Assembly (NCBI GenBank): GCA_004764695.1
Contig: SMSO01000035.1
Coordinates: 2,790,001-2,854,000 of the forward strand
DNA from: Schizochytrium sp. TIO01
Taxonomy: Eukaryota; Protista; Bigyra: Labyrinthulomycetes
Direction of reading: 5' to 3'
DNA length: 64,000 nt
In this document: piece after piece, positions 17,542 to 55,625 of the stretch
Layout: each line of letters starts with the position of its first letter
Numbering within the stretch: the stretch's first letter is position 1
The notes under the pieces: generated by a model
Databases searched by the model: none
What the model saw: the letters and a program-made list of their open reading frames with translations, nothing else
What the model was told of the DNA's origin: nothing
Program-made: the position numbers and the translations under genes

Positions 17542-20500
17542 ATGTCGGACCACCCACGTGTTGTCTATGCCCTTGAACAGCTTCGGAATGGCGCTACAAC
17601 ATTGAGGTAAGTTAACACGCTCGCTCGCTTGCTTGCTTGCTTGCTTGCTTGCTTGCTTGCTTGCTTGCTTGCTTGCTTGCTTGCTTGCTTGCTTGCTTGC
17701 TTGCTTGCTTGCTTGCTTGCTTGCTTGCTTGCTTGCTTGCTTGCTTGCTTGCTTGCTTGCTTGCTTGCTTGCTTGCTTGCTTGCTTGCTTGCTTGCTTGC
17801 TTGCTTGCTTGCTTGCTTGATTCATTGATTCATTGATTCATTGATTCATTGATTCATTGATTCATTGATTCATTGATTATGCATTAATCAAAGAGGAAAA
17901 TGACAACACAACAAAGAGGAAATCCTAAAAGCCAACTTAGATCACTCACGTTCACGCCTGCATACGTGCCTCTCATGCAATGTAATATATTGCTTGCCAT
18001 CATTCAATCAATTCGACAGTCTTTCTTGGAAAAAGATCGGCGACGAGGGTGCCAAGGCAGTGGCTGCGGCGCTGAAAGAGAACCAGTCGCTGACATCACT
18101 TGAGTAAGTTGTCTACGCAACACCGTAGCGTATGGACTCGTTTGTACATGATGCTTGGTTTGTTGTTTGGTGGGTGGGTCAGTGTTGTTTTGCAAGTTTA
18201 TGCAATCTCTTGTTTGTTTGATGGATGGATGAGTTGTCTGTTTGAGTGAGTATACATCCATCGAACAAAGAGCAAAATGACAACACAACAAAGATAAATG
18301 CTGAAAGCCAACCTAGATCACTCACGTCCATGCATGCATGCGTGCATCTATTGTAATATGTAACGTGTAATGTATTGCTTGCCATCATTCAATCAAATCG
18401 ACAGTCTTGAACGCAACGATATCGGCTCAGAGGGCGCCAAGGCAGTGGCTGCGGCGCTGAAAGAGAACCGGTCGCTGACATGGCTTGAGTAAGTTGTCTA
18501 CGCAACACCGCAGCTCGTGGACTTGTTTGTACATGATTCTTGGTTTGTTGTTTGGTGGGTGGGTCGGTGTTGTTTTGCAAGTTTATGCAATCGCTTGTTT
18601 GTTTGATGGATGGATGGGTTGTCTGTTTGTGTGAGTATACATCCATCGAACAAAGAGCAAAATGACAACACAACAAAGATAAATGCTGAAAGCCAATCTA
18701 GATCACTCACGTCTATGCATGCATGGATCTATTGCATCTTTTGTAATATGTAATGTGTAATGTAATGCTTGCCATCATTCAATCAAATCGACAGTCTTGA
18801 CCACAACGATATCGGCGACGCGGGCGCCAAGGCAGTGGCTGCGGCGCTGAAAGAAAACCGGTCGCTGACATCACTTGAGTAAGTTATCTACGCAACACCG
18901 CAACTCGTGGACTTGTTTGTACATGATGCTTGGTTTGTTGTTTGATGGGTGGGTCGGTGTTGTTTTGCAAGTTTATGCAATCTCTTGTTTGTTTGATGGA
19001 TGGATGGGTTGTCTGTTTGAGTGAGTATACATCCATCGAACAAAGAGCAAAATGACAACACAACAAAGATAAATGCTGAAAGCCAACCTAGATCACTCAC
19101 GTCCATGCATGCATGCGTGCATCTATTGTAATATGTAACGTGTAATGTATTGCTTGCCATCATTCAATCAAATCGACAGTCTTCGGGAGAACAATATCGG
19201 CTCAGAGGGCGCCAAGGCAGTGGCTGCGGCGCTGAAAGAGAACCGATCGCTGACATCACTCAAGTAAGTTGTCTACGCAACACCGCAGCTCGTGGACTTG
19301 TTTGTACATGATGCTTGGTTTGTTGTTTGGTGGGTGGGTCGGTGTTGTTTTGCAAGTTTATGCAATTGATTGTTTGTTTGATGGATGGATAAGTTGTCTG
19401 TTTGAGTGAGTATACATCCATCGAACAAAGAGCAAAATGGCAACACAACAAAGATAAATGCTGAAAGCCAACCTAGATCACTCACGTCCATGCATGCATG
19501 CGTGCATCTTTTGTAATATGTAACGTGTAATGTATTGCTTGCCATCATTCAATCAAATCGACAGTCTTTCGCGGAACGATATCGGCTCAGAGGGCGCCAA
19601 GGCAGTCGCTGGGGCGCTGAAAGAGAACCGGTCGCTGGCATCACTATCGTAAGTTGTCTACGCAACACCGCAGCTCGTGGACTTGTTTGTACATGATTCT
19701 TGGTTTGTTGTTTGGTGGGTGGGTCGGTGTTGTTTGACAAGTTTATGCAATTGCTCGTTTTTTTTATGGATGGATGAGTTGTCTGTTTGAGTGAGTATAC
19801 ATCCATCGAACAAAGAGCAAAATGACAACACAACAAAGAAAAATGCTGAAAGCTAACCTAGATCACTCACGTCCATGCATGCATGCGTGCATCTTTTGTA
19901 ATATGTAACGTGTAATGTATTGCTTGCCATCATTCAATCAAATCGACAGTCTTTCGCGGAACGATATCGGCTCAGAGGGCGCCAAGGCAGTCGCTGGGGC
20001 GCTGAAAGAGAACCGGTCGCTGGCATCACTATCGTAAGTTGTCTACGCAACACCGCAGCTCGTGGACTTGTTTGTACATGATTCTTGGTTTGTTGTTTGG
20101 TGGGTGGGTCGGTGTTGTTTGACAAGTTTATGCAATTGCTCGTTTTTTTTATGGATGGATGAGTTGTCTGTTTGAGTGAGTATACATCCATCGAACAAAG
20201 AGCAAAATGACAACACAACAAAGAAAAATGCTGAAAGCTAACCTAGATCACTCACGTCCATGCATGCATGCGTGCATCTTTTGTAATATGTAACGTGTAA
20301 TGTATTGCTTGCCATCATTCAATCAAATCGACAGTCTTCGGGAGAACAATATCGGCTTAGAGGGCGTCAAGGCAGTGGCTGCGGCACTGGATCAAAATCA
20401 TGTTCTCCAGAAATTATCGTGAGTTTGTACAAATTAAATTAATTTTATCGAAAGCTTGAGTGAAATGAAATGAAGCTTGAAAATGATTTAAACTAACGAA

Positions 20501-53500: not shown

Positions 53501-55625
53501 TGTCTACGCAACACCGCAGCTCGTGGACTTGTTTGTACATGATGCTTGGTTTGTTGTTTAGTGGGTGGGTCGGTGTTGTTTTGCAAGTTTATGCAATCGC
53601 TTGTTTGTTTGATGGATGGATGAGTTGTCTGTTTGACTGAGTATACATCCATTGAACAGAGAGCAAAATAACAACACAACAAAGATAAATGCTGAAAGCC
53701 AACCTAGATCACTCACGTTCATGCATGCATGCCTGCATCTATTGTAATATGTAACGTGTAATGTATTGCTTGCCATCATTCAATCAAATCAACAGTCTTT
53801 CCTACAACAAAATCGGCTCAGAGGGCGCCAAGGCAGTGGCTGCGGCGCTGAAAGAGAACCGGTCGCTGACATCACTTGAGTAAGTTGTCTACGCAACACC
53901 GCAGCTCGTGGACTTGTTTGTACATGATGCTTGCTTTGCTGTTTGGTGGGTGGGTCGGTGTTGTTTTGCAAGTTTATGCAATCGCTTGTTTGTTTGATGG
54001 ATGGATAAGTTGTATGTTTGAGTGAGTATACATCCATCGAACAAAGAGCAAAATGACAACACAACAAAGATGAATTTCTGAAGGCCATCCTAGATCACTC
54101 ACGTCCATGCATGCATGCGTGCACCTATTGTAATATGTAACGTGTAATGTATTGCTTGCCATCATTCAATCAAATCGACAGTATTTCCTACAACAAAATC
54201 GGCGACGTGGGCGCCAAGGCAGTGGCTGCGGCGCTGAAAGAGAACCGGTCGCTGACATCACTTGAGTAAGTTGTCTACGCAACACCGCAGCTCGTGGACT
54301 TGTTTGTACATGATGCTTGCTTTGTTGGTGTATTGTTTTGATCGGTGTTGTTTTGCAAGTTTATGCAATCGCTTGTTTGTTTGATGGATGGATGAGTTGT
54401 CTGTTTGACTGAGTATGCATCCATCGAACAAAGAGCAAAATGACAACACAACAAAGATGAAATTCTGAAAGCCAACCTAGATCACTCACGTCCATGCATG
54501 CATGCATCTAATGTAATGTGTAATCTGTAATGTATTGCTTACGATCATTCAATCAAATCAACAGTCTTGAAGACAACAAAATTGGCGACGAGGGCGCCAA
54601 TGCAGTGGCTACGGCGTTGAAAAAAAACCGGTCGCTGGAGTCTCTTAGGTAAGTTGTCTTAGCAACACCGCAGCTCATGGACTTGTTCGTACATGATGCT
54701 TGCTTCAGTGGTGTGTTGTTTAGCAAGTTTATGCAATCGATTGTTTGTTTGATGGATGGATAAGTTGTCTGTTTGACTGAGTATGCATCCATCGAACAAA
54801 GAACAAACTGGCAACACAACAAAGATGAAATCCTCAAATCCAGCCTAGATCACTCACGTCAATGCATGCATGTATCTAATGTAATGTGTCATGTGTAATG
54901 TATTGCTTGCCATCATTCAAATCAAATCGACAGTCTTCAAGGCAACAATATTGGCGACAAGGGCGCCAAGGCAATGGCTGCGGCGCTGAAAGTGAACTGG
55001 ACGTTGGCAGAAATAGAGTAAGTTGTCTACGCAACACCGCAGCTCACAGACGTTTTTGTACATGATCCTTGCTTTGTTGGTTGGTGGGTGGGTTGGTGTT
55101 TTTTTTGTCCAGTTTTGTTTAGCAAGTTTACTCAATTGCTTGTTCGTTTACTTCTGTTTTTGCTCTTTTGGTTGGGGTGGATCTAACAGAGAACACGACC
55201 ACATCAAAGGAGAAATGAAATTGTATTATCATTCCTTTGGGTACCTTAAATGAGGTTCAATTGTTAACTGACGAACGGAGATGATGCTATTTGGTCTGCT
55301 AATTCTTAGATTAAGATTGAGCCATGAAGGACAGAGGGAGCTGAAATTGAATGAAGATATTTATTATGCAAAGACACGAAGGACAAGTCTTGAGCAGATC
55401 TCTCGTGAGCTTGATTGTATACATGCTGTAAACAATGCACTTTCTATGCCATCTTCAGTGAAAGTCAGTCGCTTTGCACAGAGTCTGCTTGCTAGCAGTA
55501 ATAGTGAGCAGAGCTCGAAAGAGGAATTTCTTGCTACGCAGAAAGCAGAGCTTGATATATTGGAAGCTTTAATCGTTGCCTTTAGGGAGTCATTGGGATT
55601 GCTGGGCCCTTACATTTTCGAATGA
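47519..55625 (+). CDS. Gene C: spliced RI-like LRR(20) protein with a short helical C-terminal tail, about 686 aa; paralog of the gene A N-terminus
   Basis: Exon 1 is 47519-47583 (MSDHPGVVTALEKLQNGATTL). 84-nt LRR exons start at 47781, 48159, 48559, 48937, 49329, 49722, 50119, 50516, 50900, 51279, 51525, 51895, 52282, 52654, 53024, 53411, 53796, 54182, 54565, 54934. The probable last exon is 55310-55625 (branch-like GCTAAT, TTAG acceptor, phase 2). All donors are GTAAGT and no exon contains a stop. Confidence 0.85.
47606..47678 (+). repeat. (GCTT)n microsatellite in intron 1 of gene C
   Basis: Same motif and position as in gene A but much shorter. Confidence 0.95.
47680..55140 (+). repeat. 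Tandem ~370-400-bp exon+intron array C (20 LRR units), same family as array A
   Basis: Recurring catcattcaatcaaatcgacag|tctt...gagggcgccaaggcagtggctgcggcgctgaaagagaaccggtcgctgacatcactNNN|gtaagttgtct. One unit has a shortened intron (51363-51524). Confidence 0.95.

Follow-up and report, generated by a model that had tools for sequence, protein, structure and literature searches.

Long rDNA-spacer repeats of Schizochytrium sp. TIO01 as probable exon-intron units of expressed, receptor-like leucine-rich-repeat genes

Three exon arrays among the ribosomal RNA genes

This study analyzed a 64,000-nucleotide stretch of DNA (the window) from the thraustochytrid protist Schizochytrium sp. TIO01 in which three arrays of long repeats lie among 5S rRNA genes on the minus strand and two 18S-5.8S-28S units. 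Repeat arrays were located by using Tandem Repeats Finder (TRF), rRNA genes by using Rfam, and exons through a pattern scan of the window (Table 1). TRF reported 6-9.5 copies per row, and exon counts gave 7, 20, and 7 units. The pattern scan recovered what a preliminary description had reported of the repeats: 34 units in three arrays of 7, 7, and 20, each with one stop-free exon of 84 nt (33 of 34) or 96 nt (one), and phase 2 introns in all three genes. All 34 leucine-rich-repeat (LRR) exons are preceded by AG, start with T, end in two bases that open a codon, and are followed by GT. The 96-nt exon (45350-45445, gene B array) arose through an in-frame 12-nt duplication. The single 84-nt exon of a unit encodes one 28-residue RI-type LRR.

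A frame check, run exon by exon from ATG to stop, found the models of genes A, B, and C open from ATG to one terminal stop, with GT..AG introns and phase 2 everywhere. The preliminary description had placed a short ATG exon in front of each array and an in-frame domain exon downstream; the frame check, spliced contigs, and conserved paralogs revealed that this is true of the three genes.

Table 1. Features of the three genes and their surroundings in the window
Feature	Position	Strand	Remarks
Gene A exon 1	17542-17606	+	ATG, 65 nt, ends in phase 2; read from sequence, frame check
Gene A LRR array	18020-20418	+	7 exons of 84 nt, introns ~301 nt
Gene A LRR exon starts	18020, 18405, 18795, 19180, 19565, 19950, 20335	+	
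Gene A terminal exon	20505-23088	+	860 codons + stop; Roc GTPase, COR-A, predicted C-terminal TIR
Gene B exon 1	45627-45679	-	ATG, 53 nt, ends in phase 2; read from sequence, frame check
Gene B LRR array	42758-45445	-	7 exons (one of 96, six of 84 nt), GTACGT donors, introns ~340 nt
Gene B linker exons	42460-42585 and 42170-42241	-	phase 2 at entry and exit
Gene B terminal exon	39323-42011	-	helical region, protein kinase, Cys/His-rich RING1-like and RING2-like region
Gene C exon 1	47519-47583	+	ATG, 65 nt, same type as gene A exon 1
Gene C LRR array	47781-55017	+	20 exons of 84 nt
Gene C terminal exon	55310-55625	+	conserved 104-aa helical tail + stop; continuous frame
TRF array	17889-20389		period 385
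TRF array	42793-45403		period 422
TRF array	48720-55081		period 370-393
5S rRNA gene	16952-17070	-	Rfam; divergent from gene A
5S rRNA gene	37754-37872	-	Rfam; brackets gene B
5S rRNA gene	46935-47053	-	Rfam; brackets gene B
18S-5.8S-28S unit	24982-30509	+	Rfam; downstream of gene A
18S-5.8S-28S unit, second	58670-64000+		Rfam; downstream of gene C

Gene A is modeled with 9 exons and 1079 codons (1078 aa), in which seven LRRs precede Roc-COR-TIR. Its first exon specifies an N-terminal cap with the pattern MSDHPxVVxALExLxNGATTL. Pfam identified Roc (3e-16), COR-A (3.8e-12), and TIR_2 (6.3e-12) in the terminal exon, in agreement with the Roc-COR and TIR domains proposed earlier, and the P-loop GKGGSGKTS and a DYGGQ motif are readable in its translation. 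The Roc GTPase stands directly before COR, the order that defines ROCO proteins. On the basis of TIR_2 and a weak match (E = 0.009) to the solved structure PDB 4lzp ("Putative uncharacterized protein"), the predicted TIR domain can be considered established. The genome contains approximately 16 full-length open Roc-COR-TIR exon paralogs and a few copies with stops.

Gene B (10-11 exons, 1138-1180 codons, approximately 1140-1180 aa) encodes, in order, seven LRRs, a linker, a helical region, a predicted kinase, and a RING region that may be RBR-like. A start homologous to its exon 1 occurs also in the paralogous locus L018. The array belongs to a second family (family B), the introns of which are unrelated to those of family A. 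A direct splice from the last LRR exon to the kinase exon would yield TAA, and gene B therefore needs at least one linker exon; the two present partly duplicate one another, and the paralogs L018 and L019 carry a single longer linker exon homologous to them. Pfam found the kinase domain that had been proposed (Pkinase, 2.1e-28) in the terminal exon, and the motifs HCDIKPEN and GDFDG are readable in the translation. Of at least 51 kinase-exon paralogs scored, 43 lack internal stops.

The preliminary description had also named an RBR domain. Two zinc-finger-like blocks of conserved Cys/His columns are present across 16 gene B terminal-exon paralogs, and AlphaFold2 modeled the RING1-like region at pLDDT 81-92 and the RING2-like block below 50. 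The top Foldseek matches of the RING1 model were RBR RING1 domains (RNF216, HOIL-1, RNF144A, ARIH2, and HOIP), all weak, with a best E of 6.5e-3, and Pfam found no IBR domain in the gene B terminal exon. A PDB sequence search returned the RNF4 RING (E = 5.6e-4) and parkin (E = 0.57). The models thus weakly support an RBR-like region.

Gene C (22 exons, 687 codons, 686 aa) combines 20 LRRs with a conserved 104-aa helical tail. Its tail exon has approximately 97 genomic copies, nearly all open; 14 aligned paralogs exhibited 53-94% identity and 31 invariant columns, and AlphaFold2 predicted long helices (mean pLDDT 70.6).

Constraint, diversification, and splicing across the genome

The genome contains at least 1021 family-A and at least 342 family-B exon cores, in arrays of 7 to 22 exons among those seen, and a 65-nt ATG exon stands in front of all 16 arrays with upstream sequence. 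Some of the repeats are located far from the ends of contigs. The family-A profile, L-x-x-N-x-I-G-[SD]-E-G-A-K-A-V-A-A-A-L-K-E-N-R-S-L-T-S-L-x, follows the 28-residue RI-type pattern LxxLxLxxNxIGxxGaxxLaxaLxxN. Nine of 10 single exons matched Pfam LRR_6 (E = 3e-5 to 0.035), one of them above the gathering score (24.1 vs 23.4).

In an alignment of 225 distinct family-A units from 19 arrays, gaps occurred in 0 of 84 exon columns, whereas 218 of 301 intron columns contained them (Fisher p = 4.5e-38). No stop was found among 255 family-A exons, and 305 of 318 units at 21 loci were canonical and open. The family-B paralog arrays L018 and L020 were intact in all of their exons (11 and 22, respectively). 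In the family-B array L019, 12 of the 19 exons were broken by 1-2-nt indels or stops, indicating that some arrays are decaying or misassembled.

Variation was saturated only at four or five concave-face codons. In family-A exons, entropy was highest at codons 2 (3.5 bits), 3 (3.4), 5 (3.0), and 28 (2.4), where up to 19 residue types occur; it was 1.6 bits at codon 8 and did not exceed approximately 1.0 at the other codons. The residue mix at the hypervariable positions was rich in Ser, Arg, Tyr, Gly, Trp, Asp, and Asn. Nucleotide diversity reached 0.58 at non-synonymous positions of the hypervariable codons; fourfold sites had approximately 0.06-0.10 and introns 0.098. Together with the gap pattern, these figures back the earlier characterization of the family as diversifying. 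Hypervariability extended to a synonymous site, the third base in the last Leu codon (diversity 0.67), for which protein-level selection alone is no sufficient explanation.

The introns were approximately 90% identical across more than 1000 units.

Most arrays might be transcribed relics, pseudogenic repeats that recombination beside the rDNA keeps uniform and that have open frames because a single intact unit was recently amplified. The units are so similar (85-93% TRF matches between units, and the low intron diversity) that open frames in different copies are not independent observations, and both the broken L019 and the few kinase, tail, and Roc-COR-TIR copies with stops fit this explanation. 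Recent amplification does not, however, explain why indels spare the exon columns, why saturated variation is aligned to codons in exons free of stops, or why tail and kinase exons stay open down to 45-60% identity. We consider it highly improbable that the arrays are mostly relics.

The read evidence for splicing consisted throughout of contigs assembled from a multi-copy family. In contigs of four public runs from four studies, the RNA label of which is a guess (X1 may be DNA), LRR exons were joined precisely at the predicted splice sites, with donor-side joints at 18103, 18878, and 19263 and acceptor-side joints at 18405 and 19565. Several joints carried a few extra letters starting with TCTT, which are hypervariable codons of a paralog, and loose contig ends joined the 65-nt type of ATG exon to LRR exons starting with TCTT. 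In run X3, the end of an LRR exon was joined to the start of a paralogous tail exon. Because the genome contains 0 exon-core pairs at intronless spacing and 461 at intron spacing, the joined contigs represent RNA. Depth in exon-bearing bins was 21-28x that of intron bins in X3, X5, and X6, and contigs free of differences lay on the gene A terminal exon (e.g., 21319-21699 in X1 and X3).

Since the contigs stem from a multi-copy family, most joints derive from paralogs and are not provably from genes A, B, and C. The junctions 20418/20505, 42170/42011, and 55017/55310, predicted earlier, were not directly seen in contigs, the tail junction being represented only by a paralog. We consider it likely that the ~385-bp and ~422-bp rDNA-spacer repeats are exon-intron units of expressed protein-coding genes with a receptor role.

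Comparison with LORE-TEARS and with known receptors

The work on the repeats named LORE-TEARS was reportedly published by Collier et al. in Curr Biol in 2023. In Aurantiochytrium limacinum MYA-1381, these repeats form arrays of approximately 2-23 units, with unit lengths of ~385 bp in Group 0 and ~421 bp in Group 5 and mean copy numbers of 9.3 and 5.4, respectively; Group 0 lies between 5S and 18S genes and Group 5 between two consecutive 5S genes, the 5S genes being opposite to the rDNA strand (bioRxiv 10.1101/2023.06.15.545109). The preprint describes them as without GenBank similarity and possibly playing a part in maintaining chromosome ends, and coding capacity is unmentioned (bioRxiv 10.1101/2023.06.15.545109). 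The preliminary description had guessed that the present arrays are such elements, and when compared by description they fit: the gene A and C arrays match Group 0 and the gene B array matches Group 5 in unit length (385 and 422 bp), copy number (about 6.5-20 units), and position in 5S-18S and 5S-5S intervals with 5S on the opposite strand. The complete ends of one contig (C3) also have the published order of rDNA, 412-bp repeat, 362-bp repeat, and TTAGG telomere. In repeats like those of Groups 1 and 2, no comparable exon was seen. LORE-TEARS were described as repeats only, whereas here they appear as exon arrays of expressed genes.

The published interpretation treats the repeats as structural, non-coding DNA for the maintenance of chromosome ends or rDNA, and their coding appearance would be coincidental. 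Their regular place beside subtelomeric rDNA and 5S genes agrees with such a role, as do a G-rich motif, GGTGGGTGGGTCGG, in the family-A intron and the G-quadruplexes predicted in 32% of Group 0 elements (bioRxiv 10.1101/2023.06.15.545109). As a sole explanation it is contradicted by the spliced transcripts, the exon-specific constraint and LRR_6 matches, the in-frame fusion to Roc-COR-TIR and kinase exons, and the annotated Hondaea homologs described below; we regard it as extremely improbable. A structural role of the DNA could nevertheless coexist with coding.

Brown algae (Ectocarpus and Saccharina) carry exon-shuffling LRR-ROCO and LRR-kinase candidate receptors, the LRR exons of which are 72 nt and encode a 24-residue LRR (PMC3341825, PMC11378527). 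Common to both systems are a stramenopile host, one LRR per exon, phase 2 introns, variable repeat number, diversifying concave-face residues, and an LRR-Roc-COR core. The present genes have 84-nt exons and a 28-residue RI-type (LRR_6) repeat, and they therefore constitute a separate variant rather than members of the brown-algal gene family. They differ further in that their introns are homogenized to the identity given above, their arrays accompany subtelomeric rDNA and 5S genes, their output modules are TIR after Roc-COR, kinase with a possibly RBR-like region, or the 104-aa tail, and their host is a unicellular heterotroph. Related proteins are P0002-P0005 of Hondaea fermentalgiana (LRR_6 + Roc + COR + TIR_2), which are 42-45% identical over the Roc-COR-TIR exon; they were automatically named "Leucine-rich repeat serine/threonine-protein kinase 2" or "NOD2" but contain neither kinase nor NACHT. 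A transcript-derived protein of A. limacinum has a gene A-type N-terminal cap followed by LRR and Roc.

Animal and plant NLRs use RI-type 28-residue LRRs, and plant TNLs carry a TIR output. A ligand-binding LRR solenoid with hypervariable concave-face residues is common to the present family, NLRs, and lamprey variable lymphocyte receptors. In the exons scanned (one linker exon and the terminal exon of each of the three genes), Pfam found neither NACHT nor NB-ARC, and a Roc-COR GTPase occupies that place; the earlier label "NLR-like" thus holds only by analogy. Somatic assembly is a feature of the lamprey receptors, and the likeness to both receptor groups is one of functional analogy, not of membership.

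Proposed function and significance

With introns in phase 2 throughout and T as the first base of every exon, duplication, loss, or exchange of units leaves the frame intact, and no stop can arise at the split codon NN|T. The conserved ATG exon caps the array, and the last LRR exon leads to one of several output modules (Roc-COR-TIR, kinase with a RING/RBR-like region, or the 104-aa helical tail). Unequal crossing-over and gene conversion between nearly identical introns, possibly favored by the location beside subtelomeric rDNA on many chromosome ends, would keep introns and framework codons uniform and change repeat number, and selection would hold four or five concave-face residues per repeat maximally diverse. 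Ligand binding would fall to the LRR solenoid and signaling to the GTPase/TIR, kinase/E3, or coiled-coil tail. The most likely function would be a cytosolic ligand-sensing repertoire, for example for pathogens or viruses, and the family may serve in immunity.

Alternatively, the genes may be real and spliced, with an LRR surface that serves self/non-self or mating-type recognition, environmental or prey sensing, or regulated protein-protein scaffolding and outputs that act in ordinary signaling. The structural evidence fits this explanation equally well, the commonest class (the 97 tail exons) has a helical tail only and no recognizable immune output domain, and many brown-algal ROCO genes respond to abiotic stress too (PMC11378527). 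In contrast, TIR fused to Roc-COR and hypervariability confined to the concave face, with its residue mix, are typical of immune receptors, and the species carries persistent mirusviruses (PMC12606086). We consider such a role outside pathogen sensing rather unlikely.

A bolder suggestion, which at present appears improbable, is that rDNA-linked subtelomeres are a diversity generator, in which frequent ectopic recombination between chromosome ends, perhaps aided by alternative use of the symmetric exons, reshuffles more than 1300 LRR cassettes so fast that clonal lineages differ in receptor repertoire. If true, a unicellular protist would possess an immune strategy of an adaptive-like kind, perhaps aimed at the persistent mirusviruses, and the presence of rDNA and such a gene at every chromosome end would be explained.

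The findings support the presence, in the rDNA spacers, of a very large receptor-like protein family that diversifies quickly. Repeats that were presented in 2023 as a novel class of non-coding DNA would then hold well over a hundred expressed genes, which slip past ORF-based or BLAST-based annotation because they consist of 84-nt exons, and each Aurantiochytrium chromosome end would be re-read as carrying rDNA and a receptor-like gene. The exon-per-repeat receptor architecture, known from multicellular brown algae, would extend to another LRR class and to a stramenopile that is unicellular and heterotrophic, and concerted evolution of a framework alongside extreme diversification of binding residues would be readable in the DNA of a genetically tractable organism.

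Exon arrays and gene models of the window

The window had been described as carrying 34 repeat units, each an acceptor, a short exon and a donor, arranged in three arrays. A pattern scan combined with reading returned exactly 34 units, namely 7 (+), 20 (+) and 7 (-), and all 34 proved in the scan to have an AG acceptor, a stop-free exon of 84 nt (96 nt in one) and a GT donor. T is the first base of each exon, and the last two exon bases open a codon that the next exon completes, which makes all introns phase 2. Donors read GTAAGT in the arrays of genes A and C, which are built from ~385-bp units (family A), and GTACGT in the ~422-bp units of gene B (family B). 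Exons 5 and 6 of gene A are identical, as are exons 12 and 15 of gene C; these pairs are recent unit duplications. In genes A and C, the intron that separates the ATG exon from the LRR array holds a length-variable microsatellite.

Features of the window
Feature	Position	Strand	Details
18S-5.8S-28S units	24982-30509; 58670-64000+		two
5S genes	16952; 37754; 46935	opposite to rDNA units	three
tRNA genes	31401-32492		three of the four in the window; just 3' of the first 28S, at the internal rDNA copy
Long-period array	17889-20389		period 385 (Tandem Repeats Finder)
Long-period array	42793-45403		period 422 (Tandem Repeats Finder)
Long-period array	48720-55081		period 370-393 (Tandem Repeats Finder)
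Gene A	ATG exon 17542-17606; terminal exon 20505-23088	+	9 exons, seven of them LRR exons; 1078 aa
Gene A intron 1 microsatellite	17619-17878		(GCTT)x50, then (TTGATTCA)x8
Gene B	ATG exon 45679-45627; linker(s) 42585-42460/42241-42170; terminal exon 42011-39323	-	seven LRR exons; 1137-1179 aa with one or two linker exons
96-nt exon (gene B)	45350-45445		intact; 84 nt plus a 12-nt in-frame duplication
Duplication in gene B	42170-42780	-	~300 bp; gives two partial copies of linker exon and intron
Gene C	ATG exon 47519-47583; terminal exon 55310-55625	+	22 exons, twenty of them LRR exons; 686 aa
Gene C intron 1 microsatellite	47605-47678		(TGCT)x18, same place as in gene A
AT-rich region	32000-36000		GC about 0.35; short repeats, no Group-1-type 406-bp repeat
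Open frame	255-3302	+	1015 aa; UvrD-like helicase domains, weak F-box-like match near the N-terminus
Open frame	12660-14075	+	471 aa; no Pfam family
Open frame	3878-4915	-	345 aa; no Pfam family

Frame continuity was scored exon by exon in a script, and the results revealed an uninterrupted frame in all three genes from an in-frame ATG exon through the array into a downstream domain exon, as the preliminary description had proposed. Skipping both linkers of gene B produced a TAA at the junction. Its paralogs at two other loci (L018 and L019) have a single, longer linker exon.

Sequence searches and structure predictions were performed on single exons and on the contiguous terminal exons. Single LRR exons matched the Pfam family LRR_6. 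The terminal exon of gene A matched Roc (3e-16), COR-A (3.8e-12) and TIR_2 (6.3e-12), and a PDB sequence search with its TIR region gave one match only, a weak one. The terminal exon of gene B matched Pkinase (2.1e-28). No Pfam family was detected in the 104-aa tail of gene C nor, in gene B, in the linker exon, helical region or C-terminus. AlphaFold2 modelled the 104-aa tail as long helices (pLDDT 70.6, pTM 0.35). The C-terminus of gene B contains two blocks of conserved Cys/His residues: the first gave a confident model whose best structural matches were the RING1 domains of RBR ligases, with weak E-values, and the second is RING2-like by its Cys pattern and was poorly modelled. Because of these weak E-values and this poor model, the RBR label of gene B is unproven.

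Constraint and diversification of the LRR exons

The assembly (64.07 Mb, 37 contigs), in which the window is G000:C34:2790001-2854000, contains 1021 exon cores of family A and 342 of family B, and reversed controls returned 0. We examined 20 further loci beyond the window and scored 318 units, 305 of which were open and canonical (AG, 84 nt, GT). The 13 exceptions all belonged to family B; one was the 96-nt exon of the window, flagged for its length alone, and the other 12 lay in the L019 array (G000:C7:1068001-1078000, minus strand), in which 12 of 19 exons had 1-2-nt indels, with lengths of 82, 83 or 85 nt, or carried stops. Frequent stops or frameshifts in the exons of other loci, which the preliminary description had set against a coding reading, were thus absent from family A and from three of the four family-B arrays, and were found in the fourth, L019. 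The indels in L019 all fall within hypervariable codons, and its downstream kinase exon (C7:1065570-1068254) is open, at 87% identity. This array is either a decaying gene or the product of misassembly or of indel errors of long reads in AAC-rich stretches.

The 225 distinct family-A units ranged from 346 to 428 bp, and this variation was wholly intronic. Their alignment revealed 0 gapped columns in the exon versus 218 of 301 in the intron (Fisher p = 4.5e-38), besides 276 more insertion columns. Positions 5-10, 14, 16, 23-25 and 82-84 of the exon had a nucleotide diversity close to saturation (0.56-0.70), and all others a low one; mean intron diversity in family A was 0.098. Entropy was highest at codon 2 (3.5 bits, 19 residue types), followed by codon 3 (3.4 bits, 16 types), codon 5 (3.0 bits, 15 types), the split codon 28 (2.4 bits, 11 types) and codon 8, an S/D switch (1.6 bits, 8 types), with at most about 1.0 bits at all other codons. 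The variable codons correspond to the x positions 5, 7, 8 and 10 of LxxLxLxxNxIG, that is, to the concave face, and are enriched in Ser, Arg, Tyr, Gly, Trp, Asp and Asn. Diversity was 0.58 at non-synonymous positions of the hypervariable codons versus ~0.06-0.10 at framework fourfold sites.

Position 82, a synonymous site as the third base of the final Leu codon (e.g., window 18101), had a diversity of 0.67, similar to that of the adjacent split codon, and this variability is not explained by selection on the protein alone. Bases 82-84 act as a few linked alleles (TGA, CAA, ATC, ATA and GTA), and position 82 is also donor position -3.

Spliced sequences and copies across the genome

Contigs of four public sequencing runs from four studies were aligned to window 17880-23100 (gene A), a stretch whose start lies 3' of both intron 1 microsatellites, (GCTT)n and (TTGATTCA)n. 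The results bore out in part the claim that the predicted junctions are spliced: intron-skipping joints were found at five boundaries of the gene A array, the 17606/18020 junction was represented by loose ends only, and the 20418/20505 joint was absent among the contigs over this stretch. Many of the joints skip the predicted introns exactly (e.g., 18100 to 18405, in all four runs), that from 18878 to 19565 has GT..AG ends, and breakpoints fall at predicted exon ends (donors 18103, 18878 and 19263; acceptors 18405 and 19565). The contigs are assemblies from a multi-copy family, and the joint from 18103 to 18414 carries nine intervening letters starting with TCTT. Such short inserts always begin with TCTT and stand in place of hypervariable codons, which is how spliced mRNAs from paralogous arrays would be expected to look. 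Among the loose contig ends, an ATG-exon type was fused to an LRR exon; in one contig, an LRR exon was joined to the start of a paralogous tail exon.

Because the runs were labelled RNA only as a guess, the depth and exon-spacing controls matter. Exon-bearing bins were 21-28x deeper than purely intronic bins in runs X3, X5 and X6 and 3.2x deeper in X1, which may contain DNA. Exon-core pairs in the genome numbered 0 at intronless spacing versus 461 at intron spacing; therefore, the joined form is absent as DNA in this genome. Some contigs were identical to gene A on its Roc-COR-TIR exon (e.g., 21319-21699), for which the next-best paralog is 83% identical.

The 65-nt ATG exon, encoding MSDHPxVVxALExLxNGATTL, preceded all 16 family-A arrays whose upstream sequence was examined, and arrays comprised 7-20 LRR exons in family A and up to 22 in family B. 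The 104-aa tail exon has 97 genomic copies, nearly all open and down to 35% identity; 14 aligned copies were 53-94% identical to that of the window. Of 323 candidates for the kinase exon, 51 were scored, which sets a lower bound of 51 copies; 43 of these have no internal stop. The Roc-COR-TIR exon has approximately 16 open copies of full length, 55-100% identical. Matches to the Roc-COR-TIR exon outside the genome are Hondaea fermentalgiana proteins with LRR_6, Roc, COR and TIR_2 (42-45% identity) and a transcript-derived A. limacinum protein (MMETSP0961) that has a similar N-terminal cap, RI-type LRRs and Roc. The kinase exon has only three relatives outside this genome, which are unannotated and 51-59% identical. 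The suggestion that these genes escape annotation fits the search of a 5.8-billion-protein collection, in which 0 proteins were identical to the window genes.

The gene C array has a copy on another contig (L011, G000:C8:120001-130000), with 20 LRR exons and a 100% identical tail exon, and the kinase exon of gene B has a 100% identical copy at C30:1672198-1674882; both result from recent duplication or conversion between chromosomes. Five or more additional kinase-type copies lie around the window (C34:2.79-3.0 Mb). Contigs C13, C30 and C31 (7.5-9.8 Mb) carry gene clusters at several internal places, such as about 1.7, 5.5, 8.3-8.4 and 9.7-9.8 Mb on C30, which suggests either that chromosomes were chained via their subtelomeres in the assembly or that the clusters are truly internal.

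Relation to LORE-TEARS and putative function

The long repeats named LORE-TEARS were reported from A. limacinum MYA-1381, in which Group 0 comprises ~9 units of ~385 bp in the 5S-to-18S interval and Group 5 comprises ~5 units of ~421 bp between two 5S genes (bioRxiv 10.1101/2023.06.15.545109). That preprint reported that they lack GenBank similarity, proposed roles in chromosome-end maintenance, and is silent on their coding capacity. The proposal that the window arrays are these elements held when compared by description, with agreement to Groups 0 and 5 in the size and number of units as well as in their position and strand. On contig C3, which has telomeres at both ends, the right end reads Group 0 array, tail exon, 18S-28S, 412-bp repeat (x3.9), 362-bp repeat (x5.5) and (TTAGG)n, which is the published order.

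Groups 1 and 2 are AT-rich at the C3 right end, with no constrained GC-rich island or comparable exon; hence, they are not claimed as coding. Group 1-like (412 bp x3.9) and Group 2-like (362-371 bp x5.5-9.3) repeats were observed between 28S and telomere at two loci (L024, 2387-3993 and 5209-7233; L021, 851-4293); they are AT-rich and lack a constrained island resembling an exon.

The nearest known system is the exon-shuffling LRR-ROCO/LRR-kinase family of brown algae, which likewise has one LRR per exon and phase-2 introns and is under positive selection on the concave face (PMC3341825, PMC11378527). The repeat class differs (72 nt/24 aa in brown algae, in contrast to 84 nt/28 aa RI-type here), as do the output domains, the genomic setting and the degree of homogenisation. 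None of the papers in the collection searched connects thraustochytrids to ROCO or NLR-type receptors.

Output modules of several kinds are interchangeable behind one cap and one LRR family, the cassettes are symmetric phase 2 and their split codon (NN|T) is never a stop, the introns are homogenised, and repeat number varies among arrays. Exchange between introns, through unequal crossing-over and gene conversion, may shuffle and homogenise the cassettes and would be favoured by their location beside rDNA on many chromosome ends, and selection would maintain the diversity of concave-face residues. No signal peptide is evident in the predicted proteins, which may be cytosolic sensors. Their putative signal outputs are a GTPase switch with TIR, a kinase with an E3-like module, or a helical tail that would oligomerise. 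Our best guess for this receptor-like family is an immune role, in view of the TIR domain, the diversification pattern and the mirusviruses that persist in this species (PMC12606086). A repeat class published as "non-coding" is now read as genes.
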